A DNA stretch of 64,000 bases from Perkinsus chesapeaki ATCC PRA-425. Its lineage: Eukaryota > Protista > Perkinsozoa. The translations under genes and the position numbers were made by a program. How positions within the stretch are numbered: the stretch's first letter is position 1; every line of letters begins with the position of its first letter. This document shows positions 2,144 through 64,000 of the stretch, piece by piece. Where the stretch lies: NCBI GenBank assembly GCA_013115145.1, contig JAAPAO010000125.1:1-64000 (forward strand), in the 5' to 3' direction. The notes under the pieces are model-generated. The model was not told the origin of the DNA. It saw only the letters and a program-made list of their open reading frames with translations, and searched no databases.

Positions 2144-2165
2144 GGTGTGGCCCACACCGTGTGAG
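2144..2165. mobile_element. hAT-type excision footprint (near-perfect)
   Basis: g-GTGTGG-c-CCACAC-c-GTGTGA-g. Both loop bases are the complements of the outer target bases; one mismatch in the third D copy. Confidence 0.7.
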
Positions 2166-2750
2166 ACTCGCACTGTGAGCCCTTAGCAGAAACCATATGT
2201 CCGAGATGAGCGCCGATGCGGTGAGCTGATCTTTCTTTAAACTCCGTTACAATAACCCTTGTATGTTAACAGTACATCTACTACAGTACTCGGAGGTCGT
2301 ATTTGAGCACCATTGATGTAAGAAAGCTCTATCCGAAACCCGACTAGACGATTCGAGTGGCTTCCATGGGGGCAGTGCAAAGAACAATATCGGTTACCCA
2401 CGGGGTAGATTTGTTGCCTGGGCCAACTTGCCAACTGCTTTGCGGAGTATTCGACAGAGCGTTGAGCTCACGACACCCACAGCAGACGACGCTGCTCTCT
2501 TCGTTGAACACGAGCTCCGCCGAGCTCTATGATGAGCAATTATTTTGCTATCGGAATCGTACACTAGATCGCACACAAGATTATTGAACAACCGAGACGA
2601 TGCTTAATGAGCTTTATTTTGACTCTCGATGGATGTTGCGAAGTTAATAACGGACTACCACTGAAACTGGTTGTGGGTAATGAAGTTGGAGGAGCTTTTT
2701 AAAGAGCTCAACGATCAACATCAGTCTAAGATGGGACTTCTCTTGCCAAG

Positions 2751-3428
2751 TCATGGTTCATACGTACACACTCCAGGATAACCAATTTTCTCGCAGTAGC
2801 TCCCCACCCCCGCTGGACAATCCTAAAAGCACTTCTTGGTGCACAATGGTCGAATCTCGTATGTAAGCGGCTGCTCACCTTGGTCGAGTTGCAATACAGT
2901 TCACAAACTTGCAAACTTTCCGCCGTACGAGTGCAGCTCACTTTGCCCGTAGAGGGAGCAGGGCAATTTCCAAAAGGACAGAATGGCACGCACATCACGC
3001 CCGTTAGCTTGTATCCGAGAAGTGAGTCGGTCTAACGCAGTCCAAGACATACAGGACACAATTTGTGCTCTTTGTGTCACACAAAGAGCAGATATACTCA
3101 CTATAACATAGCTCAGATACATGCCTTGGCAGTCACAGTCCGTTATCTCTCTACTGTACGGTTCAGCGCTCAGCAGACATTGACCCACCGGCCTCTTATA
3201 GGCCAGACCTATAATACGAAAAGATATCGTGTCTAATCCCTCGTTTGGTACTCACTAGTAGTATTACTGGTAGTGGAAGAACGCACAGTCGGGTACCTAC
3301 GGAGGAACGCTCAACCGTACTATCACCGAGTTCAAGCAGCTCGCTCACTCGTCCAAGTTCCCTTGATGCATCATCTGGACCAAACCGATGGACACGGCGG
3401 TGGTCATGCAGAATCCCAGAATATTCAT
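2751..3428 (-). CDS. Small Cys-rich secreted protein, paralog 1
   Basis: Spliced: MNILGFCMTTAVSIGLVQMMHQGNLDE|YPTVRSSTTSNTS|LAYKRPVGQCLLSAEPYSREITDCDCQG..|..KLTGVMCVPFCPFGNCPAPSTGKVSCTRTAESLQVCELYCNSTK|DCPAGVGSYCEKIGYPGVCTYEP*. Cys spacing and intron phases match paralogs 2 and 3. Confidence 0.8.
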
Positions 3429-3500
3429 TATGTTGATAGTAATGCGAGGAGAGAATTCAACACGGACAGAAGAATCGTAGCCGGTTTCCGTCATGGTCAC

Positions 3501-3620
3501 AATGCAAATGTCACCGATGGTGACAATGCAAATGTCACCGATGGCGACAATACAGATGTCACCGATGGTGACAATGCAAATGTCACCGATGGTGACAATG
3601 CGAATGTCACCGTTGGAGTG
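3501..3620. repeat. 24-bp tandem repeat, about 5 copies (AATGCAAATGTCACCGATGGTGAC)
   Basis: Directly visible. It lies about 70-190 bp upstream of the paralog 1 ATG and reads as (DGDNANVT)n in the + strand ORF 3273..3710. Confidence 0.95.
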
Positions 3621-4761: not shown

Positions 4762-5070
4762 AGGTTCCTAGAGGCAGCCTTACTTTTCGAGGAGGTTCCT
4801 GCTCCAGGAATCCTAGAGGAAAGTAGTTCAGAAAATTCGCGCGAGCGCTCTAGGGAGGTTCCTCCTCTATAAAGTAGTACATTGCGTTACTCAAGGGCCT
4901 CATGATGAGGCCCTCATCACTGATGAGTCATCAGCGCAAGCAGAGCTGGGCACAAGCAGTCATCACGACCCCGCAGGAACATAGGGGTTCCTGAACTGGT
5001 CGAGATGAAAAGGTTCCTGGAATCTATCGCATCGTTGAAAAAGGTTCCTCGAGGAGCCTCAAAGGTTCCT
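4762..5070 (+). repeat. Cluster of AGGTTCCT motifs (6 exact plus 1 GGGTTCCT), all in the same orientation
   Basis: Exact copies at 4762, 4793, 4856, 5011, 5042 and 5063; variant at 4985; intergenic. Confidence 0.85.
4894..4934. repeat. Nested 1-nt-loop palindromes (compound footprint-like)
   Basis: AGGGCCTCAT-g-ATGAGGCCCT, CTCATCA-c-TGATGAG and CTGATGA-g-TCATCAG overlap one another. Confidence 0.8.
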
Positions 5071-5456: not shown

Positions 5457-6151
5457 TTAGGGAGGATATAGACACACCCGCGGTGCCTTCGGACCCACAC
5501 ATGTCGTTCCTCTAGGGCAATCCTAAACAAATAGAAGATAAGTGTTGTAGCTCCAGATGCCAACAAGGCTCACCTCATCCTTATCACACGATAACTGACA
5601 AATATGGACGCCCCCAAAATCAGTGCAGGTCGCTCTTTCGGTCGGTGCGCCCGGGCATGCACCTTCATTGGTACAGGCTGGCTCACACATTACCCCGAGG
5701 ATTTTTAGAAACGGCCACACTTCTATCTGAAGCCGGTAGAGTGGCAGCTAGCACGAAGCATAGTATAAGCTCCTCACCCAACAATGCAGGTAGATGTCCG
5801 CGCCAATGCAATAGCAGCCCTTTACTTGACCATCTGGCGTCAATTCACACGTCCCCTCGGGCCACGTGTAAGCTATGCCTGAAAAAAAGCAAAATAGCAG
5901 GCTTCCCGCTTGTGACGTTACTCTCATCATCAGGAAGTGCTATAGTCGACAAGTGCCTGACATACGAGTCGTCTGTGTACGTTATGAGCGAAAAGCGGTT
6001 CACTCACCAGGCCCCCTGGAAAATAGATTCATAGATCATCTGGGTACGGGCGATACACGACTCGTGTATCGCCATGTCTTGATCACAGTCGCCTCGTGTA
6101 ACACGAGGCGACTGTGATCAAGACATGCAGCTGATGCAGCTGATGGAACAT
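5457..6151 (-). pseudogene. Small Cys-rich secreted protein, paralog 2; signal-peptide exon interrupted by a 46-bp palindromic insertion
   Basis: Removing 6061-6106 restores MFHQLHQLHVLITVASCIARTQMIYESIFQGAW|HLSTIALPDDES|IAYTWPEGTCELTPDGQVKGCYCIG..|..KILGVMCEPACTNEGACPGAPTERATCTDFGGVHICQLSCDKDE|DCPRGTTCVGPKAPRVCLYPP*. With the insert, the frame from ATG 6151 hits a TGA. Confidence 0.7.
6049..6127. mobile_element. Long two-sided hAT-type excision footprint (12-bp and 27-bp perfect hairpin arms)
   Basis: GGCGAT-ACACGA-c-TCGTGTATCGCC, then CATGTCTTGATCACAGTCGCCTCGTGT-a-ACACGA-GGCGACTGTGATCAAGACATG. Target is t-ACACGA-g and both loop bases are as predicted. Confidence 0.85.
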
Positions 6152-7682
6152 ATTAACACTTAGCCTTGGTGGCTCAGGCGAAAAAAATGCTATTTCCTGC
6201 GATAAATAGTAAGTCGGTGACGCCTCTCGGGCTTGGGGAGTTCAAATTGGAACTCTGAGATGCCGGGGCGGTCCCAGTGGGACAGACTCACTGCGCATCA
6301 CCGAAACACGGTTTCATCAAAACTGCTTGTTCAAGTCTCCATAGAGGAGAAGCATCGTTTTCGATTTTTGTTATTGGGAGTTTGACAAACTCAGTTTGTA
6401 CTCATAGCGGCGAAAAAAGCGGCCGGCGTGAGGTCCAAATGCAGGCAGTGCCTCATGAGCACCGGCTTGGCCGCATTGGTCACGGAGCATTTATGACAGA
6501 CTAGTCTTCCTACTGCATACTCTACCCAGCTCCTACCCTAGCTTCTCAGGAGGATCTTAAGAAACCTAGAATATGCGCCTGGTCAAAACAACCGACTTTT
6601 TCAGTGTTTTGGTGTCAGAGATAGGTCTCAGTCGTAAGGCTAACCGATGAGTGCAACCCAAAGTTCATGTCGACAAAGATGACTCACATATGTATTGATA
6701 CATCCGTGGGTGCGTAACGAGACTTGGGATAGTCTGAATCCATGGGTCACGGTGGTTAGTCGCGATAAAGTGTCGTAGTCTGATTCTTTAGATGTTCTCG
6801 TAGCGTCTGGTTGATGAATTGACTGCTTCTAATACCGAAGGATTGGACTTAATCGACGTAACAGCGGCGGGTTCATTCAGACACACAATTTCAGAGCACG
6901 CCTCATTCAGTCTACGCACTCAGGAACGTAACACCAACTCCGAGAATATACTGGTAGGTTAAAGTATGCATGGGAAGCAAGCAAGCCTCGGGCCTGACTT
7001 GCAGTATGGAGATATCCACATATAGACACCTCGGCTTCTGTCACGCGGTCGCTCCCACATGTGTATGCGTACAAAAGCGGTCGGATGGAAAGGTACTTTA
7101 ATGACTCATTTGCCTGTTGATTTACGAACTAATCGTATAGTTGGATTTAACATGCTTTCAGCGATGTGCAAGCGTTTTGTCACAGTAAGTTTAGCTGGTC
7201 GCACAAATTATCCCGCTCGATTCCTGGCGAGTGCATTTCTCTTGCATTTTTTTTCAAAAACTCAAATAAAACAAAGTAAATCAGGTGGTTTGGAATTCAT
7301 TTATGGCGGTCATTTATCGCCTTATGTGCAATGGGCAGCTCATTATCGTCGCAAGATACCAGGGACTGGCCGGAGCCACCGTAGCTCTCTCGAATCGTCA
7401 ATATTTCTTTTCCTGTAGTCTCTTGCGCGCCTTTGTTTATGGACACTGCTTCCCCTGCCACAAGCAGTAGTGATTCATCTTCAGCAGCTCCGGAGCGAGC
7501 GGGAGAGCTACCACGGTGAGACGGACAAAATGATAAACATAGAGCGTTCGTTTTTTGTTGGGCCAACTGACCGTTCGGAAAAGTGCTCTCACAAGAAGTC
7601 TGCCAGGCCGCTGTTGTCTCTGGCATCCCGTCTCCACTCTCTATTCGTGACATTCCAACAGCGTGCAGCAGCAGTGACCGCG

Positions 7683-21766: not shown

Positions 21767-21959
21767 CTGGAAATGTCTCGAGGCAGAGAGTATTACGCTT
21801 GGTCGAAAGACTCACTCACATGAGCAGGGCTGACGCCCCTTACTTACAACAACTTCGCTCGTTCGACTCCATACAGTATTATTCCTATTTTAAGAATAGT
21901 ATTTTTCTCTGTCGATCAAGGAGTCACAATTCTGAGCGGTACACCTGGGCCGGTATGCG

Positions 21960-22560: not shown

Positions 22561-25500
22561 TGACTTCTCTCTCTGTTACACCTGGAAGCTTAACGAGCTC
22601 TATGCTGGAACGCTCCGATATGATCAATGGTGTGACTCACACCATTGATCGATTCACGTTGCAGAATACATACAGTAATTTTTAAAATATATTTCTCGCT
22701 ATAAAGCCAAATGAAGGAACATGGTTTGTTCAATGCTCGATAAGCCACTGCAGATTTCTGGAGGAAGACCTAAAGAACCAGATGTAAGAGGATACTGAAT
22801 GAGACGTGTATCATACTAAGTAAATATGCAATTGGTTGTGAGGACCGGCGCAGGCCCAGAAAAAAAAGAGCGGCAACAGGCGGACTCTCACTGTATGACA
22901 AACAACACAAGACAATGAATCTTAAGAAAGATGCTCCGTGGACCATTAACTGGCAGCAAAGTGATTGAGTTGATCCAGCTAAACCAAAACTTATGTGGGG
23001 GGAATTCAGCTGGGCAGGATAGGCTGAGATGCAGTTCAAGCCCCTCTCTCTGACGGACGAGCAATCTCGTTAACCCCGCGGCATGGAAGAATCTTCGCTC
23101 AGACTACAAGTGATGAGTTTTCAATTGTGAGACCGGATCTCAGAGACCTCGGGAAAGAAGAATGTTGACTGATAAGACAATAAGTAGTGCCAAGGTGAGC
23201 GTGAATAAAAGAACTCCCCTAATACCATTTAATAATAATCTTTCACGTAGAAGTTATGGGGGATACAAGCACACGCTGGGATTTATTAGTTTCACGCAGA
23301 AGGTGCCTTGAGGGCAGTCCTGACAAGCATGCACCTGCTTAGCGCTTCTCAGTGGCTCATCGGCCGAGCCGTTCCCGTCACCTTTGATGAAGCGCAGAGG
23401 ATCTTGCAGAATTGTCCCGGAGTACTCGCGCATTGGGCTTGACCCCTGGGTGGAGCAGGACAGGCGCCTTGAGGGCATCCTGGTACACACATTACTCCTT
23501 CCAGGAAGTCGTGGAAGAGGTAATGGTCCTAGACTTTTTAATAAGCAGATAACTTTCAAAGCAAGGAAAAGATTCCGAGATTTGAGCTCACATATACGAA
23601 AAATATGTCGAGACTGCCACACGAGCAGCCCTAAATGCGCCTGTTCTTCAACACACATTTACCATCCGGCTTCGAGTAAGCCATACCTATGAGAGAATAT
23701 GAGATATAGTGTATTTGTAAGAGGATAGACGTACTTCTATTGTTAACAAAAGACTGCCTGGACCTTTCGTACCTGATGTGCGACCATCAACGAAATTGGT
23801 GCATGATAGACGGCTCAATTACCCAATCATGCCCGAATCCTTCTGGTATATCGTCTGGATAACGGCAATGCAAGAGACGATAGAGCTGAAAAGCTTCAGA
23901 GCGCCGAACATGTCGCAAATTTGCCTATGCTGACAAGTGTGCTGACAAGTTGCCAGTGGTCGAGTCCGCTGAGTCACTGTTGAACCAACGGCGTTGGTGA
24001 CCTGCCACTGATCTTGCTTCTCCTGTGACAGCGTTCTTGTCTCCTAGATCTGTCGGAATGATGGTAGCTCGAAACTCTTGGAAATTCCAAGTTAGAATGT
24101 CGGGAATGACCACAGTACTGATGGCTAGTGTCGAAATTGCAAAACAACGTTTGGGTAGACTTCCAGAAAGAAATTTGACAGCATTACCATCATGTACTCG
24201 TCTTTGGCAATGCTCACCAAGCAGAAATATGTACTCGCGGCTCCACAGCCTAGATTTGTGGTACCTAGGGCTGTATTATGCACTCATTATCACAACCAAC
24301 CAACCTGCATCACTCTTTACGACCTTAGCGGGTCGGATGAATGCTAGTTCTCTTGATCAGCATCTTCCCGGGTTATCGAATGTCTGAGCTGGAAGAGCTC
24401 GTTAGGTCAGCTCACCAGCTCATCCCCCAACGAGCGCGACGTGATTCGTTAGACGTTACTGAACAAATGAGAGAGGTAAAGAAAGATCCACCCCGGATAG
24501 CTGACTAGAGATATGTGTGCAAGTTGGACTGATCTAGTAGGTTCTGGCATTTATAGGAACAGTCTGTGGACCTGCACGTCCTAATAGCTACTCTCCAAGT
24601 ATGGATTTGAAAGTTAAGACTGAGTCGAAAGAACTACCTCAAATAAGTTTGTTGCTCTACTAACACCGCTCGAAGCCTGCTGCTCAGTTAAAAACGCGAT
24701 TACTGATGGGACTCGCGTGGTTCGCATTACAGACGAGGGTATAATAGATATGAGATCTCCTATAGTTGTCGCCCAGAGGGGGGTAAGAAAAGACAGCAAT
24801 TGTACATAACAGACATGATATGGGCATGGCCTCCTACTCAGGCATCGATCACGATTGAAGGCATCAGGCAAAGGACTATTCTGAAATGCAGTTTGGGACC
24901 AGTCCTCATGATAGCGGCGCCGCACACCAGAGTCACCCTCAAAAATTTAGTAGGTGTTCCGTTTGTTAACCCCAACATTTGATATTGCAGTTTATTATGT
25001 TCTTTTATATTATAAAATAATATAAGCACTGGTTGCCTACTAGTATAAATACTCACCGCGCTACCTGAGACTCTCCAGCGCCACTAAATTTTCCCATTCT
25101 GAATTCAACTGAGCAATACTGAATGCTTATTCAGTGAACCATCATTCAGTGCAGTACGCGACGTCTAGGAATGCGGGGTCAGAAGGAGTAAGAGGCTCGA
25201 GGAGTATAGCTCAGATCATCTTTCTGGAAGAGAAATATATGAAATTACTGTCTTAGAATTTCTCAGAATTTAGTATTGTTACATTATGATTAGGATGCGC
25301 ACTCTCCCGTGTGGTGCTCGTTTAGGTGCTGGATGGGTCACTAGGATCTGGTCGCGAGTCTTCGTACGATGTGGTTGAGTTAACAACTGGAAGGGACGAG
25401 ACTGGAACAGTCGTTGTGAAATTCGAATCGTGCCGCATCGCAAACAGTAAGTCTCTCACAATTTGAATCAAGTTAAAAATGTTATGCTGATATAAATTAT

Positions 25501-26349: not shown

Positions 26350-29300
26350 TGATGAGATGCCCTTCAACTGACTACCTCACGCTCATTCAAAATTTGGATG
26401 AGCATTAGGTAGTCAGTTCCTAATTCGGGTTGCTATAAAGGAGTATTTGGATCTCGAATACTTCTTCAATGAAGAATCTTCTAGTACAGGTTAGTACGCA
26501 TTAAGGCGCTGCAGTTTCCAACATTCATATCCTCACACCGTCTGCAGTCTTAACAAGACTCTTGAGAAAGCTTATGTGGTCTCCAATAGGTATTATATGC
26601 CACAACTGCGATACAGCCAGGACAACCTCCAACGACGGGTTGCAGGAAAACGTTGTAAGCGGAGACGCCTTGCCTCAGTGTCCCCCTGCTTCCTTCCAAG
26701 ACTATTAGTCAGTCAAACTACTAGCCCGTAGATAACCGACGTTGGAACTGGATCTGCAATGCTTGTGGACTATCCGCTGCCACCGGTGACACAGACGGGC
26801 GGTGCACTTATTACCGTAGGCTCATTCCCTCAACCAGCCTGCGCACAACTAGCAGTGCAGGTATTGCATATGGATAACTCTGGCCGAGCCCTGGTTGAAG
26901 CCTTCGCACATGGCTGCCAAACCCGAGGAAAGTGCCAACTTTTCGGGTGTTTGCCGATCGGCATCGAGAAACGTGGAACTAATGGCCGTGATAAGTGAAG
27001 CGGGCCCTCGAGAGATCATTCAAAAAGCCTCTAATATTTGTCTTGGGTTTAGAGACCAACCTAGCTGAGTTAATCAAATTGTGTACTTTGCATTATTGCG
27101 GTTTCGCTCATGCTGGCAAGAGCCGATAAGCAATAGGTTCGGAATTTATCGCCGGGTGATACAGGAAGTAAGTTGGAACATTTACCTGGAGCCACCACTG
27201 GTCTAGTCGTATGTTAAGAAGTAGACTATTTGCTCATGTCACGACGACCCGGCAAATCGTTTGCACAAGGCAACTCAGGAGATCAATTGAGAGATGACAG
27301 CGACAACATATCACTCCCTCAAGTACGTCGTAAAGCTCGGAGAGGCCCGCTACCGTGAACCAAGCATTATGAGCTTGAAGCTTCGTGTTGTGCCTCTTCG
27401 TCCTGTGTACGAGTCTGGATGACGTATGACCTTAACTGCACCTAGAGTCCTATACAACCTGCCAAGACGTGATATTATATTCTTATTTGGCAGGCTGCAG
27501 TTAGCTGCTACTCCGCATGTGAAGTTTACCTCAGATGCCTAGAGACTCTACCACTGGGAGAGCCAGGCAACAGCTGCTTGCGGAGCTAGGGTTCACTGGA
27601 CAATCAGCCTTCACTGACCTTGTGAACGACGATCCAGAACTCCTCCTCGCTTCGGGCGCCTCATCGGCTGCTATTATCGACCGGTACTGAAGTCTGATCC
27701 ATATGACTTACAAAACATTGATACTAATCGATTTGATAGATATCGAGTCATTGAGAAAAAGCTCCGCGAGAAAGAGAGGGAAGTGGACAACTTACGGGCG
27801 GACAACGGACATCTGAGGACGGAGGTCAGTAGATGGTGGGGTTTCCCGAACCGCCGTTCCTCCCAGCTCGCAAACACAGCCGGTCCTCCATCTCGTAGCT
27901 CTGATAATAGAGCTCTGATAAAAACACAGATGGGGCTTCTCAAGTAAGGTTTGTAACAGGAGCTTTGGGGCCGCCTTAGGCGCTAGCAGTGTCCTAGCCA
28001 TCCATTATACTTCGTCAGGCGTGAAATCGTTTCCCAGCGAGAGGCGATTGCTCAGATGAGCTGGAAGGAACAGTGGATGCAGAATTGCATACAATGGTGA
28101 GCATACTTTACTTCAGTGACATCTGTGTGCTTATGTTACATTAGCACGTAGCATTATAAATTCACGCTCAAGTTATTACAAGTTCTACAATTCACAACTC
28201 CTAAATGACCTTCTTCAGGTATTCAGCAAAGTCTGGGTTAGGGCTTCCAAAAGAGCTGGTGAATATGCCGGCCAGAGAGGCAAAACCAGCATCAACTTCA
28301 TTCGCCGAGGTGAAAGCTCACACGCCACGAGCTGTGGCCGGGCCACAGCCGCACAGCTTCTCCGACGCTGTTGCATTCGCTCTCGGCCCCACATCAATAA
28401 TTGCCACTGTTCCTCGAGTAGATGGGGAGTCTGGATCAGCTTCTCCAAGAGACACATACTCATTAACTTGTTTGGCTGCTAACATCCTGTCATATTAGGT
28501 AGATAAGGACATTGCCGAGATTGAGGCAATCTACCGGCAGAGGAAACTAGACCAGACACATGGAGGACAGCCGGCAGAAACTCTCAACCGTCAAGAAGGC
28601 CGGGTAGAAATGACTTCTGTGCACGACGGTCTTGGTATAGCACACCACACTGTATACGCTGCGCTTAATAGAAGATGCTCACTTAACTTGTTTTGAGGAA
28701 TGACCAAGGATGTGAATCTTGTAGGCTCGATCGAGTGTGGCTTCTAGTGACGCCCGAGGGGACGAACCGGACGAGGGCTCAAAAGTTAGGAAGCTCACCG
28801 AGAAGTACAAGGTGAAAAGGGGGACTCTGATTTCCGTTCGGAGCTTATTTTCCATGCAAAGGCTATGTTGGCTCAGAACCTTCGAAGGCTGTATAATAAG
28901 GCCCTGGAGGACCTCGAGCAAGCTACACGTGCTACTCCATCCCAGACGGTACATGGTGACCATATGAACACTATGACGTTCACAAGACAGGCTAGGTCTG
29001 ATCTCCAAGTGCGATAAAGACAGCTTCTTCTGTGGCATATGATAGAAAAGAGCATTTTGCCTTCTAGGCTTTGAAGAAGGTGGTCACCGCTGAGCTAGCA
29101 AACACATATGCATTCCTTGAGAAACGGTGCCAAAAGATCGAGACTGCTGCAGACGACCGAGTAAAAGCTGGTATCTATAGATATAGGCTATATCATATAG
29201 TCTCTCGCGCAGCGTCGCCTGGCTCTTTTCGGAGAATACAGTTACATAATCGAACCAGGTAACGCGATTGCTAGCTAAGCTAGCAGAGGAGTCGAAACGA

Positions 29301-31755: not shown

Positions 31756-31777
31756 CTGCACACTGTGCAGTGCACAG
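31756..31777. mobile_element. hAT-type excision footprint (perfect)
   Basis: c-TGCACA-c-TGTGCA-g-TGCACA-g; target CTGCACAG. Confidence 0.85.
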
Positions 31778-32267: not shown

Positions 32268-32289
32268 ACCTATAGTATAGGTCCTATAC
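32268..32289. mobile_element. hAT-type excision footprint (perfect)
   Basis: a-CCTATA-g-TATAGG-t-CCTATA-c; target ACCTATAC. Confidence 0.85.
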
Positions 32290-34474: not shown

Positions 34475-34496
34475 GACAGCTCAGCTGTGACAGCTG
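34475..34496. mobile_element. hAT-type excision footprint (near-perfect)
   Basis: g-ACAGCT-c-AGCTGT-g-ACAGCT-g. The first loop base is as predicted; the second is g instead of c. Confidence 0.55.
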
Positions 34497-34522: not shown

Positions 34523-34544
34523 ACTATACGGTATAGTCTATACC
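34523..34544. mobile_element. hAT-type excision footprint (perfect)
   Basis: a-CTATAC-g-GTATAG-t-CTATAC-c; target ACTATACC. Confidence 0.85.
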
Positions 34545-37461: not shown

Positions 37462-38459
37462 ATGCACATGAAGGGATTATTATCGGCAGGTCCCGAAAGC
37501 GATGGTGTCCTTGGCAATCATGTTTGTATTTTATATCTTATACAGGATGAGGGCGCAACTAGGAGCTGCGCTTGGATTGGAGGAGGTGAACAAGTGTTGG
37601 CCTCGAACATGAGGCTCTATAACCGATCCGCGATAGCCATCTGCTTGTGAGTGGTTCACCGTGATAGGAGGAGACCCATTGGAGTGGCTCCCTCGGGAAC
37701 TGTCTGGACTGCTACAGAGTATCGAGCGACCGTCCCATGACGCTGTACGTCAGGACCTCGGCTCGGGCACGGAGAGGACTCAGTTACCGTAACTGAGTAA
37801 CGCTAGGTACATCTGGAAGATGGAAGATATCCCTTCGAGCTCAATAGTGAAGTCCAATGACCTGTTTTGTGAGATACGATTTGGATCCAACGAGATTATG
37901 AGAACACGCACATACAACAACATCGGTGTGTATTGATGAGCATTCAACGCGACCACGTTCTGGTAGGTTCACGGTGCTCCCTTCGGTCGGCTTTACAGCT
38001 TAATGTCGATACATCGCATAAAGGCAGCTCATTAGTCATACTCGTTAAGAGCCACACCGGTGCGATGTCCCCAGAGCTCTGTCGCCTCTCTCTTTCCCAG
38101 AGAGAAGTTGTATGATTGTCCCGCGGGGTTTTACGGTTTTGGAAGGCATAACTTGTCAGATCGATTTAGAGTCCAACTGCTTGGCATACTGTGACACTAC
38201 CGAACCAGCCCTCTACGCCTCGCAGATTACCGGGACCGCCGGCTTCAAATGGGCAGACTCTTTCTTTGAAGAATATCACATGGTACGGGCGACGATCACT
38301 CGGGGCCAATCGGGAGGTCGTCACGTTCATGTATGTTAGATACCTCGCGGCAGAATATGGTTGAGGCTATCACCAATCCAAGATGCTGGAGTTAAAGGTT
38401 ACGACTTTGACGATGCTGAGTTGACAGTGGATGAGAAGCTCGTGTCGGCTGCTTGTTAA
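37462..38459 (+). CDS. Hypothetical lineage-specific protein; 3' part duplicated at about 44.3-44.6 kb
   Basis: Exons ...ITGTAGFKWADSFFEEY...RIWLRLSPIQDAGVKGYDFDDAELTVDEKLVSAAC*. Clear nucleotide similarity to 44290-44620. Confidence 0.45.
37778..37798. repeat. One-sided 10-bp-arm palindrome with 1-nt loop
   Basis: ACTCAGTTAC-c-GTAACTGAGT. Confidence 0.75.
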
Positions 38460-38610
38460 TTGTTACTCGTAGAATAAACCGTGTTTTTCGTTAATTCAAC
38501 TTGATGGCTGTTATCCATTGGCTGTCGCCGCATTGCGGCCGGGCCAGTTCCATTTGACCCGAAGTCGTCAAACCTGAGTGAGTTACGAGCGGTATGAGTC
38601 CACGTAGTTG
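38225..38610. repeat. Duplicated block, copy 1 (copy 2 at about 44290-44720)
   Basis: Shared strings GGTTGAGGCTATCACCAAT.CAAGATGCTGG.GTTAAAGGTT, ATGAGAAGCTCGTGTCGGCTGCTTGTT, TTGTTACTCG.AGAATAAAC and TGAGTCCACGTAG. Confidence 0.9.
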
Positions 38611-39010
38611 CTGCGTCGTAGCCGGTCCCCGCTGTACTGTATATTGCAGCGAGGGTTCGAAGCTCGAACTCTCAGTCATTGACCGGCCGGTGGAGCAGCC
38701 TGCTCCGAGCAGGCACCTAGTTCGGAATATAGGGGCCGCTACGCAAGGGGCCTCTGCTACTGCCATTTCATGCCCTTCTACTGCAGGAGTCCGCACACTT
38801 CTGCACGCGTGCGCAGATGTGTGTGACTTTTTCGAAGTGCTTATGCAGGCGCTGTATTGCAGGGCATCGCCACGAGGTAAACCCAAGCACTTCGCCTGAA
38901 ATAGGCTGAAGACATGGCGATATTCCGTATACCACTGAACCATCTTTAGTGTACTGTTCCACCTTATATTGATGTTCCTCGGACATATACGGTACTTTCG
39001 GATAGTATCC

Positions 39011-39069
39011 GCTAAACGAGTGTATGGAGAACCAAGGTATTACCTTGGTTCTCCATACACTCATTTAGC
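39011..39069. repeat. 29-bp-arm hairpin (22 bp perfect, 1 mismatch) with 1-nt loop, next to the transposase truncation point
   Basis: GCTAAA-c-GAGTGTATGGAGAACCAAGGTA-t-TACCTTGGTTCTCCATACACTC-a-TTTAGC; abuts CGGATA-g-TATCCG at 38999-39011. Confidence 0.95.
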
Positions 39070-39114
39070 ATCATAGTAGCTACTGTAGACTGCCTCAGAA
39101 GCCTTCCGTTTGCC

Positions 39115-39927
39115 CTAGTCAGGCCGCAGAAGCTTCATTATTTTTTTATTAGAAGATGAAGCATCGCTTGTTATGCTGCGCAATTGAAGCCCAATTCCAG
39201 CCTCCTCGATGATGTCCCTTATCTCAGCCGTTATGTTGGCCCCAGTGTGCCTTCCTTGTAAGCGTTGGAAATCTACGATGAGACGCTTGAGGGAGCCGTT
39301 GCTATATGTGTGAGCTACAATGCCTACAAAGAGGACCTATCGACAGACAGGACGGGGTTCTAGCAGCTCACATAAGAAGCTTGAGCGACTACTCCTAGAC
39401 CACGCGTCAATGCTCAAGTTGACGCTTCGGCAATTAGCAAACCGACCGGAAGTTGCTCAGGTCGAAAACTGCGACCGCCATACCGCAACAGCTGCGGTAC
39501 GGGTGAGTTGCGGCGCAACTCACTTTTAACCATGTCCATATGTTTGCCCACCCGCTCATGCAGCTGTCTGACTATACCTCGTCTGCTAGGAATGGGGAAG
39601 CTGGGATTGATGAGATGGATAAATTGTTCAAAGAAAGCATTCTTGACTGTGCAGAGTGGACCCCCGAGTGTATGAAATTGGATTAGCCCTTCTTTCTGCT
39701 GCTGAAGAGCCTCTTCATCGTGCTGGCCAGCTGCATTAGGAAGCTTCCTTTTTTATTGCCACAAGCGTCGTGATGGTGTTCGACACCACTCATAGACTTC
39801 TTGGAAATCTTAATCAGGTTCCCACACCATATTCGCCCCCGGGCTTTGTAACACGTATCCATCCCTTTTATTTCTTACTGAGGGGGTCTTCATTAACAAT
39901 CTCTTCGTCAACATTGTCAATATCCAT
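39115..39927 (-). mobile_element. Decayed, 3'-truncated hAT-superfamily transposase with introns
   Basis: Minus-strand translation, absent from the ORF track: degenerate BED-like WCGNLIKISKKSMSGVEHH; PLCTVKNAFFEQFIHLINPSFPIPSRRGIVRQL; FANCRSVNLSIDAWSRSSRSSFL|GIVAHTY (first catalytic D); VDFQRLQGRHTGANITAEIRDIIEEAGIGLQLRSITSDASSSN (second D). Stops and frameshifts are present; I saw no CxxH motif or C-terminal E/dimerisation region. Confidence 0.85.
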
Positions 39928-40062
39928 TTGAGAATATGATCAAATAAAGCTGCAGCATGCGGTAGATCAGGATGGGGAAGTGTCTAGCTGTACAATCCAC
40001 ACTCTATTTGGGTGCGTCAATCCCTACGTGCCATGCACGTGCGCATTTGTGTCGTAAAGATA

Positions 40063-40152: not shown

Positions 40153-40218
40153 TTCTGCCCATCTACATGTCACACAGGTGACGCGCCGCCTGCTCATTGC
40201 CATTGTTCATGCGTATAT

Positions 40219-40240
40219 CCCTATATTATAGGGCCTATGA
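40219..40240. mobile_element. hAT-type excision footprint (near-perfect)
   Basis: c-CCTATA-t-TATAGG-g-CCTATG-a. Both loop bases are as predicted; one transition. Confidence 0.75.
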
Positions 40241-40324: not shown

Positions 40325-40346
40325 CAGTGATGATCACTGAGTGATC
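40325..40346. mobile_element. hAT-type excision footprint (perfect)
   Basis: c-AGTGAT-g-ATCACT-g-AGTGAT-c; target CAGTGATC. Confidence 0.85.
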
Positions 40347-40460: not shown

Positions 40461-40482
40461 ACTAGTAGTACTAGTCTAGTAC
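40461..40482. mobile_element. hAT-type excision footprint (perfect)
   Basis: a-CTAGTA-g-TACTAG-t-CTAGTA-c; target ACTAGTAC. Confidence 0.85.
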
Positions 40483-41171: not shown

Positions 41172-42963
41172 ATGAATCGTCCAGGCTTTGCATTCGTTAC
41201 AGGCATTATTTTGGCGCAATGCGCTGTCATGGGCAAGGAGCTCCCTGACGTCGAAGTGCTCGAGAAATTTGCCCTATTCACGAAAAAGTGATATTGATTC
41301 TCTCTTCCACCACTACGTGCTCAGAGTCTGACTTCTGAGCCTCAGAATTTCCAGGTATTCTACCCCCTACGAGGATGCTATGGAAGGCACATTCAGAGTC
41401 GGAGCATTCGCCGATAACTTGAAATTCATGGACCAAAAGATTAAGAAAGGTGAATGATGGCTCATTTGGGATCCTAGGCAGCCGAACGCAACACGATGGC
41501 GTATTGCAGCTATAGTCAACTGGAATTGCAATATCAAGCCTCCACAGTCAAGTCGACTGAGTCAACCACTAGACTTGACAAGCGGAATGACTATGACTTC
41601 AATCTGTGCCACTTATTTCATTCTTCGTGCAATTGAAGTGATCGATGAGAACTCTGCTCACCAGTTCACTCAATGAACCTTATTGAAGCTCTTGTTCGAT
41701 AAACAGTGCTCATGTTCAGGGCACATGAAGGGATATCTGCCCCCACCTACCGATCTCGTCCAGGATACCCCAGTAGAGCTGAACTGGGCGGAGAGAGGAG
41801 CGGTCAACTCTCCAATGGATCAAGGAGACTGTAATTCTTGCTATGCTATAGTTACATTAGGTATGTTGGGGCTTAACTGATGAGTGATAAGCGAATCGGA
41901 CGGGCAGCCTATTAGTGGTGACACAGCTGGAGCTGCACATAATGCAGCTGCTCTGTTCGGATGGTGCAGTAGTGTGGCGAATTAGCTTCGCCAGACTACT
42001 GATCTGCTCGAGCTAAGATCACGTTTTCCCGTCAGGTGTCTTAGAAGCAGCATTTTGGAAGGCAACGGGCTCCTTGGCCAGGTTTTCGATACAGCAGGTA
42101 ATTGATTGCTCGGAAATGGAGGGCAACGAGTAGGAAGTTATGTGGAAGTTATACGATGAACGTGACTGATCCAGAGGATGCTTGCATGGCAACAGAGGCG
42201 ACACATTGCAGTATATCGTCAATTACGGTATAGTATCCGATGGCGACTATCCTTACCGCCAAATGGAAAGCGATTGCAACGCTGTTGTTGATGACAGATC
42301 GAAGCAGTGTTTGCAGGTACGTCCACTGGACGTCTTCCAGTAACCCGTGACTATTTTGTAGAGTGAAGATGAACGCCTTCAGCGATCTCCTTAGGCCCAT
42401 GACTTGGACGAGGATGATGTGACTGTCATACAAGAGAACAAGCTTAGCCAGTTGTTCCAGGCTCTTCAGGAAGGCCCTCTTGCTGTACAGGTTGACGTCA
42501 CACCAAAACAATGGAAATCGTACAAAGGAGGAATCCTCGAATGTGAGCGACCATTGGTTTTAGTGCTACCGATACTAGCCTAGTACAAAGCTCTTGTACT
42601 TAGCTTTCAAGTGCGATGGAGAAGCTGACCACGGTGTCCTACTCGTTGGATATGGAATTGAAAATGGGAAAAGGTACTGTAGAGCTGTTGCACGTTCGAT
42701 TGGTACTATTGTCCACCTTCGATTAGTTACTGGATCATCAGGAATAGCTGGGGAACTGGTTGGGGAGAAGGCGGATATGCCAGGCTTCACAGAGATCCGA
42801 CTGCTGAAGAAGGACCAGGTAACGCTACACTGTAAATGAGAGCGATTCACAATTTTGATCGGTCGCTCTTCATTTCTCAGGTTTCTGCAATATCATGCAG
42901 CATAAGGCGATAGGCGTATCGTTCAAAAGGCCGCTGAAGTCGGAAGCCTGTCGTGAGCGTTAA
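41172..42963 (+). CDS. Papain-family (C1A, cathepsin L-like) cysteine protease; apparent 1-nt frameshift at about 42751
   Basis: Signal [21 protein letters not shown]; [24 protein letters not shown]; [14 protein letters not shown]; [10 protein letters not shown]; GPLAVQV; YKGGI; [10 protein letters not shown]; YWIIRNSW(fs)GTGWGEGGY. Confidence 0.92.
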
Positions 42964-44720: not shown

Positions 44721-47191
44721 GGGTATTCCCATTTCCGTAGACCTTCTCGATAAAGCCGTTGTTGGCGAAGCATTGTATGAACCAGCATACCACAAACAAT
44801 GACTTTAGACATCACGCACTCTCATATTGGGCACAGGAATGGAGAGGGGTCTTCACTGTTGACCAAGCAGGATCATTCTGCAAAAGGGTCAACTATTTCG
44901 AGGATGCATAGCCACAGGGACCAATACGTGACAACCGCTACAGGAGTCGGAATATTATCTTGTCAACAGTTATCAATCCTTCCTGGTCAGGAACGTCCGA
45001 TTCCGATGCACAGAATCATATATCGGGCTGACCTGCTGAAGAAGTTGCCGCCATACTCAGCTGTACATTATGCCAGAGATGACCACCACAAGCTAGCAAA
45101 TGTAGCTAGGAGTATCTCGGCCACGTCGCTACCGTGAGAGGAGCTTTAGGCGATAAGCACTAATTTACAGGAGGCCGTCGGTCAGCTTCCTGACAACAGA
45201 ATGAGGATTGATCGGATGCGTTGTATTAATGAGTAGGACAGAGTTCCCTCGTAATTCAAAACACTTCGTCAGGGACGGGGCGCCTGGCAAAGACTTCTCT
45301 ATGTGCTCAGCGCATGGAGTGAATCACGCTTTACCGGCTGTGAGAGTCTACCGAGTCGACTGGGATAAGCACAGGATAAGCGATTGGGTTGAGTGAGAGA
45401 GCTTGATGCCGTTTTAGCTCACCCAACGACTTCGGGTCCACCCGCTATCATTTTCTTGCTCAGAGTTCCCCGGAACGTGCTTATGACGCCATCAGATGGA
45501 CTCGCGAAGCTTCTCTCCCGGTTTGAGGGCCTGGCGGATTCCCGTGAACATATGCCTCATTTAGCACGTAGGTGCGTGTGAGACAAAACGAAGTAAATGG
45601 TTTAGAATGGATTAGATTTCACTATGTTTGGTATCGAAACTCTTCCTGGGACACGGGGAAGCTCCCGGGATTGACAGTTCATTCCTCTTGACATTCTGAA
45701 CCGGAGTGTACAGAACAATCGAGAAGCTGGGATTTCAGGCAATAACCACCATGATCCCTGTCACCCACATCGGTTACATTTTACCAAACTCGGATACACC
45801 GCCCCAAAGTCCATTGCCCATCACCCGCGGCATCGCTACTCATCTATGTAGGATTAGCCGTGGACCTGTTAAAAAATGATCTGCGAGGCTCTCATGCAAC
45901 CGTGCTTGTTTTCAAGTGTACACTAGCGTATCCAAGTTCGGTTGAGTTTGGCATTCATCACGGAAACTAGATATGCGATTTCATTCGTCTGGGCAGGTCC
46001 TGAGCCTTGGAGGCTCAGAGTCGGAGCGGTATCGCTCGGGTGACACCCTTGCGCTCAGTCGGACGCTGCAACGCCTTCACTCATGACTCGAGCAAAGTAA
46101 GTCATGACAAAAACATCGCCCATTGCATCAGAAATATCGAATGAGTCATTCGACATTTCCGATGACATCCGTATGACACTCTGCTTGCTCTTAGTAGTGC
46201 TCATAACCTGCCTCAACCTCGTAAATGGATTATAGGGCCTTGGGTTTCGAAATTCTCTTTGAACCGTTCAACGAAGTCGCTCGGAACAAAGACGGTTGTT
46301 CACTGATGTCTGACATATGTATCGTGAGGAACGCCCGGAAAGGATCGCTTCTAGCCACACTATTGCATTTAGGGCTCTACTTCAGACTCTGCGCAAGATC
46401 CGCCCAGTGGAGCAGGCATGTAATTTGGTTCGTGCGCGGTGCCCTGTCGGTGGAGTCGCATGGAGCAGGTATGCTACTGCAGCGGCGAGATGCAAGGAGC
46501 CAGATACTCCAGCGCCTCTCAAGATACAGTCTGTATCATACAGACTTTGTGGTGCCTTCGAATCCATCAAGTTGATTCGAGCTGTTGCCAATGAGTAGAT
46601 TTTGAGGAAGGGGTTTCTAGTATAGTTGACGATGGAGTATTGTGTCGCTGTCACGCTAGCTTCGAGGTGGCCCACAAAAGTCAGATACATTAGATTCCGT
46701 CGACCAGGCATGATACACGCGGAGCATGTCCCTTCTCGCATCTGGTCATACGTGAATAGCTTTCAGTGCTATTCGTTCGGAATTATTAGAATAGAGAAAG
46801 CAGTCTCAGTTCTCTTTTATGCTCAGTCTTCTCTCGACAAGGGAACTATTTTAGCACGTATGGGCATGGAGGCTCAGCACAAAATGCGAGGATCCTCTCA
46901 GGCCGGTATTCCAGGCACTCCTGTTTCACTATTCCTAAACTCTTACATGTTGTAGCGAAGAGAATATCTTCGCTCATTTCGCTTTACTCAGCTGGTGCAG
47001 TAGAGCTCTTATTAAGGAAGGAGAATCGATAGTAAGGTCTTCCATCGACTCGGCTGTGTGCAAGCGTTTGACTGCGATCTACTGGTCCGCGCTCACTGGC
47101 AGCTTGGCAGTATTAGCATTCCTCCCTGCCTTGCCGTATAGCTGACTGATGACGTGGATCGAGGTGTGACTGTAGGGTTATTGTATTTGTC

Positions 47192-60176: not shown

Positions 60177-60499
60177 AGATTAATAGCCGCCTTAAGGCTG
60201 CTGCCTCATTCAGCGCTTGGTCACTGTCTGGTTCTGCTCGCATGTAGAATCGCAGTAGTAAATTTCTGTATAGAAGTCGCCAGTACCCTTCGGTTAGCCT
60301 ACTCGTCCTTGTGTTAATGATAGTCAAACGAAACGAATACGGACGAGGAGGAGGAGGACCATATGAGGAACGCGCGATGGTAGCCGAGGTGTCGATCGGT
60401 GTAGGGAGACTTGTTCTTCGACCCTCGTAAATTATTAGTCATACTGATTATCAGTCTCTGGGGCGCTACTGAGCAAGCCTAAAGCTGAGCGGCGAGCGC

Positions 60500-61330
60500 T
60501 CATTGCAATTCGTCCTTATATTGTATATGTCCCTGGCACTATATGATATATTGTGTGCCAGAGACAACTTCGAACAAGATTCTCAGCTCAGATCCCGCGG
60601 TTCCAAGTGAGATACTTCCGGACGCGAGTGCGGAATGCACAAGTCGTTCTTTAGATTGCTCCGATTTAGCAGGAGACCGGGACATGGTCACTACCAAAAC
60701 TCCATCCGTGCTAGAAGTATGAGCGTCCAGTGTATATCACAAGGCATTGTAAACGGCTAGAAGTTGAAAATATAACACAATCAACAAAACTGCGGGCACT
60801 TCACGAACAAGCGAGATACCAATCCTATAAAACAACGTATAGAGCATCAAATGCACTGATGAGTGTCTGATAGTCACTGGGCTAATAAGGTATTAAGTAA
60901 TAGATAAGAGAAGGTCCAATGGAAAGGTTGATCGATATCTCAATGACGTTGAGGTCTCCTAGTGAAAATGCATGTACCATTCATCCTTGGCATCTCAAAA
61001 CCGCTCTACGGTGGGAGACAACTAAAACTAGCAGGGCCATCGTGGGGTCATAAAGTTGCGTGGTCGTATGGTTGCCGTGAATAGGATAGAGCGATACTAT
61101 TGAAGTGCATTGCCACTCCAACCCGAATAATAATAGAAGATACATTTGTATTAGAGCACATGTGTTCGGCGCTACAGGCTGGTAGCTGTCATCTTAACCG
61201 CCTCATCGGGAGGCTTCATCGTTGAGGCTATCTGGCGAGATATGTAATCCTGCAATAGTAGCTGATGGTCAGGATGTTCTGCGCGGTACTTTCGACAAGC
61301 ATCTTCGAGACTCTCGACCCTGAAATACGT
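60500..61330 (-). CDS. Hypothetical protein (exon fragments, boundaries uncertain)
   Basis: Open minus-strand segments VESLEDACRKYRAEHPDHQLLLQDYISRQIA and SKERLVHSALASGSISLGTAGSELRILFEVVSG. Confidence 0.25.
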
Positions 61331-61784
61331 TCACAGTCACAAAGTCCCACTCCAACTGCTTATCGCTAGACGTAGGAAGGGCTTGCCCTCCTACTCCTGC
61401 TTGAATTCAGTTCTGTCATATCTGTGCTAACCCTACAGTCAGCGGCGTTGGACTACGTGAAACTCACACACATCTCGCTATAACGCATTATTGTATGCTG
61501 TTAGCCTCGGATGGTTGCAAAGCTCACCACTGAACAGGCACTCGCCCCGCAGCTGTATTGACTATCCACTTGGGTATAAGCCCTTTTATATCAGTTTGTG
61601 ATAGGATAAAGAGTGAAGTGTCCCTTGAATCACCAGCTTGTTCGATAATGTAGCCCGAAATAACAGTCTCAGCTCGTATATACTGAGGGACCTGATGATG
61701 CAGGTTATTTCGACCGACAGCTCCGAATTATAAAGGGCAAGAACTGCACTACTATCTGAGGCTCTTTAATATGCAAATAGAAAA

Positions 61785-64000
61785 TCAATGACGGCTCGCG
61801 AGATCTTTCAACTGCCGGAGCCAGCCTTCGATGCTCACTTCGGGCATCTCCGCTCGCGCCGCACTTCGCATAAGAATCAGGAACCTTTTGGCACCGTTAG
61901 CCGGCGACGGTGCGCCAGAGACTCTCCTATATTGGAGAAAGTCTCTGGTTTGAACACCTAGCGGAGCCTGAGCCATAATCTTTCATCAGTTCCAGCGCAT
62001 GGTAGCGCACTCGCAGCACGCAGTAGAGGGTGTCACAGAACTCGTCATCCTTGGTTGGCTTCAGCAGTCGCATTTCATTGAACGTTTTGTCCCACTCGAC
62101 GCGTCTTCTGATAAGCAGCAAGCCTGTTTGGTAGTTAACAAATCTCTGGCCTAACCCGAAGTCGTGTATGTGGTAAAGAACAAGCTCAGCGGAGGTGTCG
62201 GAAACCGTCGCCCACGCACGAACGAGTACCGATGGTGACGCATCGGACTTCAATTTGACCACCTAAACCCATACGACTGCGATTTCAGTGGGATAAGCTA
62301 CAAAAAGCATCTACCTTCACTTTAGGCTTGTTGACACAGACATCCCATCCTTCGTAAGGTTCTTTTTCCTTCTCTTCGAGGAAGCGGAACTCGCCCTATA
62401 TCCGGCTGGCGCAATTAGAAGTCACAAACGCTATCACCGTCCCGATTGGGAGCTTATGCTTCAATTCAAGGTCGAAGTTAAGGAAGTCATCGAAATCCTT
62501 AAAGAATACTTCCCGGTTGACCTGGAAGATGAGCTGGTAATCAGCCAGGCGTGTCTGCCCGATTGCTTGTCCTACTGTAGGACAAGCAATCGGACAGACA
62601 CGCAGTAGGACTCCTACAGCGACATTGGATTCTTTGCACTTCTGAGGGGCGTCGCCTTCAGTAATACGGTCCCGGGAGATAACCTATCGAGAAGAAGCGA
62701 TCTGCTAGTAGATCGCATATTTCTGACGAAAAGATCTGCTTCGTCGATGTTCTCCTCTGGGCGAAACATCGAGTTGCCTCTAAGGGATCAGGAAGTATCT
62801 TTGCACCTCGATGGCAGCTTACCTTGAGCTAGATGCTGGCGACACGTACGGCGTATCGATGTCGCCCTCTTCGACTGAGCGGATTCGCTAACTCCCTGGA
62901 ATATATAGTTTACTCATTACTTTCGCCCAAGACATGGTCAGGTTGTTTTTTCCAAGGCTGATTGATATTCAGAGCAACCTTTCGTAACTGACCGGCAATC
63001 TTAAAAGGAAACACGAGTCGACTGGGCAAGACTTTTTGAACTGCTTCGCGTATGCCAGTCTGATCTGTATCTTGCTCTTGTCTTTCCAATGCGTCCGTAT
63101 ACCTGTACAGATTTGCTCCCAATCGATGATGATAATAACCGCTCACATGAGGCTTTCTATCACTCTTTGGGTTGCTGATGGTGGATGCCACTGTGAGTGT
63201 TCGTAGATAGGCTGAAGCACGAAGGAGGAGTTCACCGAGTTCACCGAGCCAAACACACGAAATTCGATGAACACCCGCCACAAGGAGTTCGGGACACGGA
63301 TAAAATGTTAATACAAAACACACTCCTCGAATGTACTGTGAAAAACGTGTTTATGTAACAAAAGAACCCATAATGGGCCGAGCCATGCTGCGCTCTTTGC
63401 GTGGAACTTTGGCGCGTACCTTGATATTGGGGTGCTCAATGAAGGCTTTCATGCGTTTTACCACTTCGAACTGAGGCTTGGATGAGAGAGCTTCGTCCAT
63501 CGAGACGAGCGTCTTCAATATGTCTACGCAAATACGGACGAAATCCGCGCTGGAGAACGTTCGCCAGTTCTACGACCACGAATGTAGTGCGTCTTATTGA
63601 ATGGAGGCTTACCTTTAAAAAATCGTCCATGTATATCCAAAGACATTGGTGCACATCATCCCGACACAGGAAGCAGTATAGAAGTGCCTAAGTACATCGC
63701 AGTAGTAGGAGCAGACTGGGCTACTTCAACTTGATAGTTCAAGTCGTAATAGGTACAGTATAAGACCGAGCGCTGTGTTCGATTCTGAGAGCAGAGTCGG
63801 CCTCCGACCTATTTACCAGCTCCTTCTTGGCTGCATTAGAGATCATTCCTATCTCCGCTACAGGTTTGAACTCAGTTATAACCTAACACTTGAATTCGTC
63901 GGGAATTGAACTTCTTCGACTCTTACGCTTTCGAGGAACCCCGCTGGGTCGTCGCTCCGCGGGAACCTGTCGGATGCGTATCGTATAAGGTACTTCAGGC
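61785..64000 (-). CDS. Large hypothetical multi-exon protein; 5' end beyond the window
   Basis: Chain of GT-AG-bounded open exons (ORFs 63436-63654, 62910-63323, 61927-62262, 61785-61976; VNREVFFKDFDDFLNFDLELKHKLPIG). Confidence 0.55.
62549..62621. mobile_element. Long two-sided hAT-type excision footprint (42-bp insertion, 62576-62617)
   Basis: GCGTGTCTG-c-CCGATTGCTTG-TCCTAC-t-GTAGGACAAGCAATCGG-a-CAGACACGC-a-GTAGGA-c-TCCTAC-a. Target is g-TCCTAC-a and both loop bases are as predicted. Confidence 0.85.

Follow-up and report, generated by a model that had tools for sequence, protein, structure and literature searches.

What left the 22-bp forward-inverted-forward structures that recur in the non-coding DNA of this 64-kb stretch of Perkinsus sequence (hereafter, the window)? 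Each can be written as W[1-7]+revcomp(W)+W[2-8], where W is an 8-bp site, xDy, with a 6-bp core, D. We consider it probable (roughly 0.8) that each structure is the donor-site scar of one cycle of hAT insertion and excision, in which the hairpins formed on the flanking DNA were opened away from the tip and then annealed over their full 8 nt.

Scars of fixed geometry

An exhaustive scan of the window yielded 15 perfect 22-mers, and a further 11 scars, including the one at 2144, carry a single mismatch. The first-pass annotation had reported 12 such structures, and we verified the arrangement at every one of them (perfect: 4302, 31756, 32268, 32684, 34523, 40325 and 40461; mismatched: 2144, 22252, 29180, 34475 and 40219). 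While all seven of its perfect scars are real, that count was too low, as eight more lie at 4897, 4913, 6378, 31247, 33877, 34237, 38692 and 46523. At 0, 1, 2 and 3 mismatches, the mismatch scan counted 15, 10, 24 and 28 scars, against 0, 0.03, 0.43 and 6.3 per Markov-simulated window; the 2144 scar, masked by the low-complexity filter, was read by hand and is additional to the 10. In total, about 45-55 scars are recognizable in the window, where essentially none is expected by chance, and these would have added some 0.7 kb (about 1%) to its sequence. Their density, one recognizable scar per 1.2-2.5 kb, exceeds the earlier estimate of about one site per 5 kb.

The scars are listed below, all without strand. 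Perfect scars come from the exact scan and, unless otherwise stated, 1-mismatch scars from the mismatch scan; S2 is a second, independently sequenced sample that differs from the first (S1) by few SNPs.

670..691: 1-mismatch scar
2144..2165: 1-mismatch scar, W=GGTGTGGG; read by hand
3055..3085: two-sided scar (5 + 10 nt of palindromic addition) without annealing on W; W=GACACAAA
4302..4323: perfect scar, W=GTCTAGCA
4897..4918: perfect scar, W=GCCTCATC; overlaps the 4913 scar, the original sites being 2 bp apart
4913..4934: perfect scar, W=CTCATCAG; nested with the 4897 scar
6054..6107: long two-sided scar (12 + 27 nt of palindromic addition), W=TACACGAG; its palindromes cover 6049-6127
6378..6399: perfect scar, W=GAGTTTGT
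21885..21906: 1-mismatch scar
24077..24098: 1-mismatch scar
29180..29201: 1-mismatch scar, first spacer off; exact-core and mismatch scans
31247..31268: perfect scar, W=CTGCGTGC; identical in S2 contig
31649..31670: 1-mismatch scar
31756..31777: perfect scar, W=CTGCACAG; S2 contig
32268..32289: perfect scar, W=ACCTATAC; S2 contig
32684..32705: perfect scar, W=ATAGTATG; S2 contig
33877..33898: perfect scar, W=CATGGAGT; S2 contig
34237..34258: perfect scar, W=GTCCAGTC; S2 contig
34475..34496: 1-mismatch scar, second spacer off; exact-core and mismatch scans
34523..34544: perfect scar, W=ACTATACC; S2 contig
37781..37802: 1-mismatch scar
38692..38713: perfect scar, W=GGAGCAGG; within the decayed hAT transposase; S2 contig
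40219..40240: 1-mismatch scar
40325..40346: perfect scar, W=CAGTGATC
40461..40482: perfect scar, W=ACTAGTAC
41545..41566: 1-mismatch scar
42319..42340: 1-mismatch scar
46523..46544: perfect scar, W=GATACAGA
62569..62618: long two-sided scar (at least 17, plus 6 nt of palindromic addition), W=GTCCTACA

When the window was scanned by site length, the 15 perfect copies all fell at W=8, and the offset form gave none at W=7 or W=9-13; this is the sharp peak at a core of 6 that had been predicted from an 8-bp target-site duplication (TSD). The window contains 17 exact D6-N-rc(D6)-N-D6 cores, and in 15 both spacers complement the terminal bases of the site, as had been proposed. Consistent with a single-base centre, odd-centred palindromes in the window spike at an arm of 7 (44 palindromes), with a tail reaching arm 27; even-centred palindromes decay geometrically with arm length and show no enrichment. 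Of the detectable scars, about 90% have the +14-bp, fully annealed 8-nt form. The three long two-sided scars (arms 5/10, 12/27 and 17/6) each rebuild an 8-bp W and obey the same centre rule, and no enrichment of classical short hAT footprints was found in the window.

Candidate elements and the origin of the scars

The window itself contains the remains of a hAT element, at about 38.5-40.2 kb overall, broken by stops, frameshifts and scars:

38494..39983, minus strand: fragments of a decayed hAT transposase (zinc finger, RNase-H-like and insertion domains), by homology
40157..40167, minus strand: TGTAGATGGGC, resembling a terminal repeat, at the remnant's 5' edge; a 2-mismatch match to the family terminal inverted repeat (TIR), significant by position only

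The remnant is 39% identical to the protein P0001 (E 3e-9) and 63% identical over 52 aa to a P. marinus hAT ORF (E 1e-22). A hAT transposase with an RNase-H-like core and a C-terminal dimerisation domain is present in the lineage, as represented by the P. marinus L003 ORF (Dimer_Tnp_hAT, PF05699, E 1.4e-7, above cut-off), by P0003 (ZBED1_RNase-like, PF27041), and by the homologous window remnant. The family TIR is TATAGATGGGC, and TGTAGATGGGC is followed by TTACG-type subterminal motifs. One 1,167-bp P. olseni element (L002:9752-10918) has 11-bp TIRs (11/12) and an 8-bp TSD, CTCCGAGT, and copies of the family at different loci are 98% identical. A search of the window for intact elements combining TIRs with a TSD of 7-10 bp gave no credible candidate, so that its many scars contrast with few elements. 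Pfam searches of 20 long window ORFs, like a protein-atlas look-up, returned nothing useful, and neither the remnant nor P0001 matched a transposase in PDB sequence searches. An alternative genetic code, considered as the cause of the short ORFs, was tested and rejected.

We propose that hAT insertion would duplicate the 8-bp target W and that, upon excision, the transposase would nick one base into each flank and seal the flanks as hairpins, the tip of each being the complement of the terminal target base. Such one-base flank nicking and hairpin sealing are established hAT chemistry. A host nuclease would then open both hairpins at least 8 nt from the tip. The resulting 3' tails would read y'-rc(D)-x' from one flank and x-D-y from the other and, since each stems from the duplicated target, could pair without mismatch along 8 nt. 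Once annealed, trimmed of flaps and ligated, they would yield W[1-7]+rc(W)+W[2-8], for an overall gain of 14 bp. The first-pass annotation had joined the ends through the 6-bp D as microhomology, but the overlap is the whole 8 nt; by sequence logic, the middle 8 nt of a scar can be derived from either hairpin tail, and the junction lies within sequence common to both ends. Tails that failed to anneal on W would be joined directly, giving longer two-sided palindromic scars, and the three long scars, with their variable arms but the same 8-bp W and centre rule, suggest variable opening by the host and optional annealing. The hairpin-excision reading advanced earlier is thus supported by the 8-bp site, the one-base centres, the three long scars, a hAT with an 8-bp TSD in the genus, and a +14-bp paralogous pair (discussed later). 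We infer both which enzymes opened and joined the hairpins and that these particular scars belong to hAT and not another family. The case for hAT over another hairpin transposon that duplicates 8 bp is strong but indirect, because no element has been seen in, or missing from, a scar site of the window.

Another cut-and-paste superfamily with flank hairpins and 8-bp duplications, either Mutator-like or undescribed, is an unlikely maker. No direct link joins any scar to a hAT copy, and Mutator-like elements (MULEs) do combine flank hairpins with duplications of 8-10 bp (PMC5499845); however, the Muta1 hairpin holds both flank strands in full (43+43 nt; PMC5499845), predicting an even-centred W+rc(W)+W, and this no-offset form had no copies in the window at any length scanned. 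Further, only 8-bp sites occur here, with no 9- or 10-bp class, and the one-base offset is the hAT signature.

We regard as very unlikely an origin with no element ever resident, in which paired hairpin breaks at an 8-bp stagger would be the work of a host nuclease derived from a transposase, or of aborted transposition. ZBED-like domesticated hATs exist in other lineages and, as such an origin would have it, scars are far more numerous than elements in the window; yet this route needs two copies of W before the hairpins form, which insertion and gap filling supply naturally, and mobile copies with TIRs and a TSD do exist. Less probable still is replication template switching or fold-back priming, which would generate short inverted triplications without a transposon. 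While a switch to the opposite strand and back gives the same forward-inverted-forward order, it should have variable switch points, whereas the length here is fixed at 8; even the long scars rebuild exactly 8 bp, and template switching gives no basis for the single-base centre rule.

Scars in a second sample and in other species

Contigs from S2 showed 0 differences from the window over 30873-34825 and 1 SNP over 38000-40063, and the approximately 25 scars in these two regions are fixed in both samples. In the same two regions, no polymorphic window scar was seen, and no window scar site was found filled, with the element in place, or empty, reduced to a single W. Scars are present in Illumina-based contigs, as well as in P. 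olseni contigs (L001, L002) and the P. marinus ATCC 50983 assembly (L003). Since the S2 contigs carry identical structures despite SNP differences, assembly did not create the scars; given also their presence in three other assemblies, including that of P. marinus, an artefact of sequencing or assembly, in favour of which we found no point, can practically be dismissed.

A P. olseni tandem array provides one paralogous before/after pair. Copies 2-4 bear a scar on TTCATGAC; copy 1 is longer by exactly 14 bp, the predicted increment, and these form a second scar on GTCATGAA. The new spacers in copy 1, T and C, are those predicted, and slippage cannot supply them. Kinesin exons lie at 30.3-31.0 kb and have matches in P. 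olseni and in a Logan contig; via this locus no cross-species empty sites were obtained, downstream synteny being lost and the non-coding DNA too diverged to align. A 14-bp indel between old repeats at 38.3 and 44.4 kb initially appeared promising, but its shape is not that of a scar.

Comparison with known systems, and target sites

Excision footprints of Tam3, hobo and Ascot-1 are known from the hAT superfamily, as are the hairpin model of Coen and the biochemistry of Hermes. These footprints, together with those of Ac/Ds, share with the Perkinsus scars (i) an 8-bp duplication kept on both sides, (ii) palindromic additions whose centre complements the base next to the element, and (iii) microhomology junctions. 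In yeasts and plants, the centre of an Ac/Ds footprint is the complement of the base adjoining the transposon, and in yeast their arms extend up to 20 nt and microhomology is frequent (PMC5873905). Arms in Candida are at most 3 nt and those in yeast, though long, are varied, whereas Perkinsus has the full 8-nt annealed form. Likewise, known hAT hosts yield heterogeneous products, mostly short changes or deletions, in contrast to the one +14-bp product that dominates here; as short classical footprints are not enriched, the product spectrum is unlike that of every studied hAT host. The hairpin excision chemistry is known, and what is new is the near-exclusive single product and its density. A literature search of incomplete coverage found no report of such scars in Perkinsus, nor of a dominant 7+8+7 product.

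Two other systems are informative. Precise excision of mPing proceeds through the duplicated target (PMC4561436), and its microhomology-mediated end joining (MMEJ) or single-strand annealing resembles the Perkinsus case in that repair is templated by homology from the target duplication itself; in mPing, however, direct copies anneal and one target copy is restored, whereas in Perkinsus folded-back inverted copies would anneal and an inverted copy is added. The P nucleotides of V(D)J coding joints (RAG, Transib) similarly arise when sealed flank hairpins are opened off-centre to give palindromic additions, but those hairpins lack the one-base offset, the additions are of few nucleotides, and the duplication is 5 bp.

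A broader proposal, to which we give somewhat less than even odds, is that Perkinsus repairs hairpin-sealed donor sites almost exclusively by one route, in which the hairpins are opened well away from the tip and the inverted 8-nt copies of the target anneal. This would reflect weak or missing tip-opening and classical end-joining, and scars would themselves be re-used as targets. If true, the constant 14-bp increment per excision would make the scars a clock-like, sequence-independent fossil record of hAT activity, while continually supplying new non-coding DNA and small hairpins. Should the hAT-excision reading itself hold, cut-and-paste elements could enlarge non-coding DNA while being rare themselves, and this would be the first genome known to us in which excision can be counted from sequence without the transposon itself, permitting estimates of excision flux through time, local hopping and target choice. 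Perkinsus is a shellfish parasite, and its scars would offer a natural readout of the repair of hairpin-capped double-strand breaks in an alveolate parasite, a pathway relevant to genome editing in Perkinsus and its relatives.

The scars are spread unevenly over the window (P about 0.02). A trail of short hops was rejected as a description of this pattern, as scar spacing inside the dense 29-47 kb block is no tighter than random (P 0.18). The target preference nTnnnnAn is typical of several hATs, but not defining. It is absent among 25 scar target sites, where T at the second position of W and A at the seventh each occur in 8/25. What these sites do show is avoidance of T at position 1 and of A at position 8.

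Geometry and abundance of the scars

A systematic search of the window for triplets in which a 6-mer is followed by its reverse complement and then by a second direct copy, with single-base spacers between them, recovered 17 exact structures, and the 12 structures listed by the first-pass annotation were all found where it had placed them. Its two spacer rules were both obeyed in 15 of the 17: spacer 1 is complementary to the base that follows the last arm, and spacer 2 to the base that precedes the first. All 15 can be written compactly as W[1-7]+revcomp(W)+W[2-8], where W is an 8-bp word that is different in each. Matches with 0, 1, 2 and 3 mismatches numbered 15, 10, 24 and 28 in the window, compared with 0, 0.03, 0.43 and 6.3 in Markov-simulated windows. 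Once shadow hits at ±7 bp had been discarded, approximately 45-55 recognisable scars remained, which amounts, according to the stringency applied, to one per 1.2-2.5 kb; the density of about one per 5 kb given at first pass was too low. Scar numbers were roughly flat over the mismatch classes, as would be expected of steady production followed by neutral decay.

An 8-bp target duplication had been predicted to produce a sharp peak at a core length of 6, and a scan of core and spacer lengths revealed exactly this, with a lone peak at core 6, spacer 1 (17 cases) and 0-2 cases elsewhere, save at core 4, spacer 3 (28 cases), where the excess arises because the same structures are read with shorter arms. 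When the length of W was varied, the window contained 15 perfect scars at 8 bp and none at 7 or 9-13 bp, and the form W+rc(W)+W, which lacks the one-base offset, was found in the window at no length. Scars of a Mutator-like element would be expected to lack the offset and to lie on sites of 8-10 bp (PMC5499845), neither of which was observed, while template switching would give variable lengths. Palindromes with a single unpaired centre showed a spike at an arm length of 7 (44 cases) and a tail extending to 27; even-centred palindromes decayed geometrically, in line with chance. Classical short footprints, consisting of two target copies with altered central bases, were not enriched (3/35, vs 2.2 expected).

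Several hAT elements prefer the target nTnnnnAn. This preference was absent among the window scar sites, which instead avoided T at position 1 of W (0/25) and A at position 8 (3/25), an observation that rests on these 25 sites and eight more in three contigs of other Perkinsus assemblies (L001-L003). Because W rarely ends in A and almost never starts with T, the base retained at the excised element's 5' end would seldom be A. The bias could stem from either the choice of target or the cleavage step.

The hAT family and a proposed route to the scar

The window carries the following hAT remnant:

38494-39983, minus strand: broken transposase, in collinear pieces

One piece matched the P. olseni protein P0001 (39% identity, E 3e-9, in a search of 1.8 billion proteins), and another matched a 482-aa open frame on the P. 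marinus contig L003 (63% over 52 aa, E 1e-22). That frame contains a hAT C-terminal dimerisation domain above the Pfam cut-off, and a further relative, P0003, has a ZBED1_RNase-like domain. The P. olseni contig L002 holds a 1,167-bp hAT derivative whose terminal repeats match at 11/12 positions (TATAGATGGGC) and which is flanked by a perfect 8-bp duplication, CTCCGAGT. The P. olseni contig L001 contains a 98% identical copy, with homology beginning exactly at the terminal repeat and with unrelated flanks, indicating that the family moved recently. At the edge of the window remnant (40157-40167) lie an 11-mer similar to the family terminal repeat and TTACG-type motifs, and scars occur 40-700 bp outside that hAT element end in the window, L001 and L003. 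The window contains no intact element, and for no window scar was a filled or empty state caught.

In hAT chemistry, as established biochemically for Hermes, the flank is nicked one base in and each flank is sealed as a hairpin, so that the centre of the footprint is the complement of the base beside the element. Ac/Ds footprints are centred in this way on the complement of the element-adjacent base (PMC5873905). Given a duplicated target xDy, where D is the 6-mer core, a left hairpin opened at least 8 nt from its tip would leave the 3' tail y'-rc(D)-x', and a right hairpin opened likewise would leave x-D-y on the opposite strand. The two tails would pair over all 8 nt, and annealing and trimming would yield exactly the 22-mer. 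The microhomology joining of opened hairpins suggested at first pass fits this derivation, except that the overlap would be the full 8 complementary nt rather than the 6-bp D. If a nuclease had acted at sites that never held an element, the two copies of W would be hard to account for. As to enzymes, Mre11/CtIP-type opening and theta-type or annealing-type joining are our guesses.

Three longer scars each consist of two odd-centred palindromes:

3055-3085: long scar, arms of 5 and 10 nt
6054-6107: long scar, arms of 12 and 27 nt
62569-62618: long scar, arms of 17 and 6 nt

In all three, the scar rule again yields a single 8-bp W, assembled from where the left arm ends, where the right arm starts and the two central bases. 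As their arms range from 5 to 27 nt, the opening position is variable; this suggests a host nuclease and not a cut at a set position. The long scars also show that direct joining without annealing of W occurs occasionally.

Scars in independent assemblies and a before-and-after case

A sequencing or assembly artefact is excluded by independent data, namely contigs of a second sample (S2, 2022) and the P. olseni and P. marinus assemblies. The S2 contigs showed no differences from the window over 30873-34825 and one SNP over 38000-40063. S2 differs from the first sample at 39017, 40498 and 41884, and is therefore not the same data set; none of the approximately 25 scars in the two compared regions was polymorphic between samples. 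Among the contigs of other assemblies, obtained via a transposase relative, L001 has two perfect scars in 3.7 kb, L002 has scars within a tandem array and one elsewhere, and L003 (P. marinus ATCC 50983) has one perfect scar. Protein searches from the window found relatives only in P. olseni and P. marinus. Non-coding DNA had diverged beyond alignment, which defeated a comparison across species. Our literature search, which was incomplete and does not prove novelty, found no publication describing such scars.

In the L002 array (L002:3566-9700; P. olseni JABANP010000389.1), which adjoins the hAT derivative, a 1,386-bp unit occurs in tandem approximately 4.5 times. The same three scars are present in every unit, and are thus older than the amplification. 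Copies 2-4 contain the scar TTCATGA-GTCATGAA-TCATGAC, while in copy 1 a single 14-bp insertion has converted the middle word GTCATGAA to GTCATGA-TTCATGAC-TCATGAA. As predicted, the two spacers created by the insertion, T and C, complement GTCATGAA at its last and first base, respectively. Slippage was rejected as the source of the insertion, as these spacers were unavailable for copying. Judged by their sequences, the copies appear to provide a clean empty-versus-scarred comparison, though a paralogous one from a sister species. Copy 1 also shows that an existing scar can be hit again, like the overlapping window pair 4897/4913.

Possible shorter target sites and other features of the window

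At TGAC (42493-42496), a contig found in both samples, which stems from the alternative haplotype or from a close paralog (seven further differences in 510 bp), has 29 extra bases. These form two odd-centred palindromes with 9-nt arms and centres G and A, following the complement rule for a 4-bp TGAC; between them lies CGTCACC, apparently a copy of right-flank sequence. From this arrangement, the window allele probably represents the empty site, and the extra bases a polymorphic, hairpin-type scar left by a transposon, perhaps Chapaev-like, that duplicates 4 bp of target. Inside the hAT remnant (38999-39062), odd-centred palindromes with 6-nt and 22-nt arms rebuild a 4-bp ATAC by the same rule, a statistically weak second candidate of this class.

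Two direct repeats, 38328-38513 and 44469-44640, lie 6.1 kb apart, are 85-89% identical, and begin approximately 165 bp before and 4.5 kb beyond the hAT remnant; an old segmental duplication and long terminal repeats are both candidates.

The remaining features are:

3493-3616: tandem array, period 24 bp, 5 copies; one frame reads a repeated NANVTDGD peptide
55993-56235: tandem array, period 81 bp, 3 copies, in a G+C-rich block at 56-60 kb
30341-30990, plus strand: kinesin 3' exons, 77-90% protein identity to the kinesin on P. olseni contig L004
30873-30970, 34797-34911, 35800-35899, 39955-40310 and 43516-43900: short multi-copy segments at 4-15x single-copy depth, with a few differences in the runs

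The 4-15x segments are members of dispersed repeat families. In every run, words of the tRNA-Trp gene (30076-30149) occur at ~60x single-copy depth and have flanks that differ, which suggests that the genome contains many tRNA-Trp-like copies. The order of tRNA then kinesin is kept in the Logan contig L005. An NAD(P) transhydrogenase gene follows the kinesin in L004 and L005 and is absent from the window, indicating a rearrangement or a paralog there.
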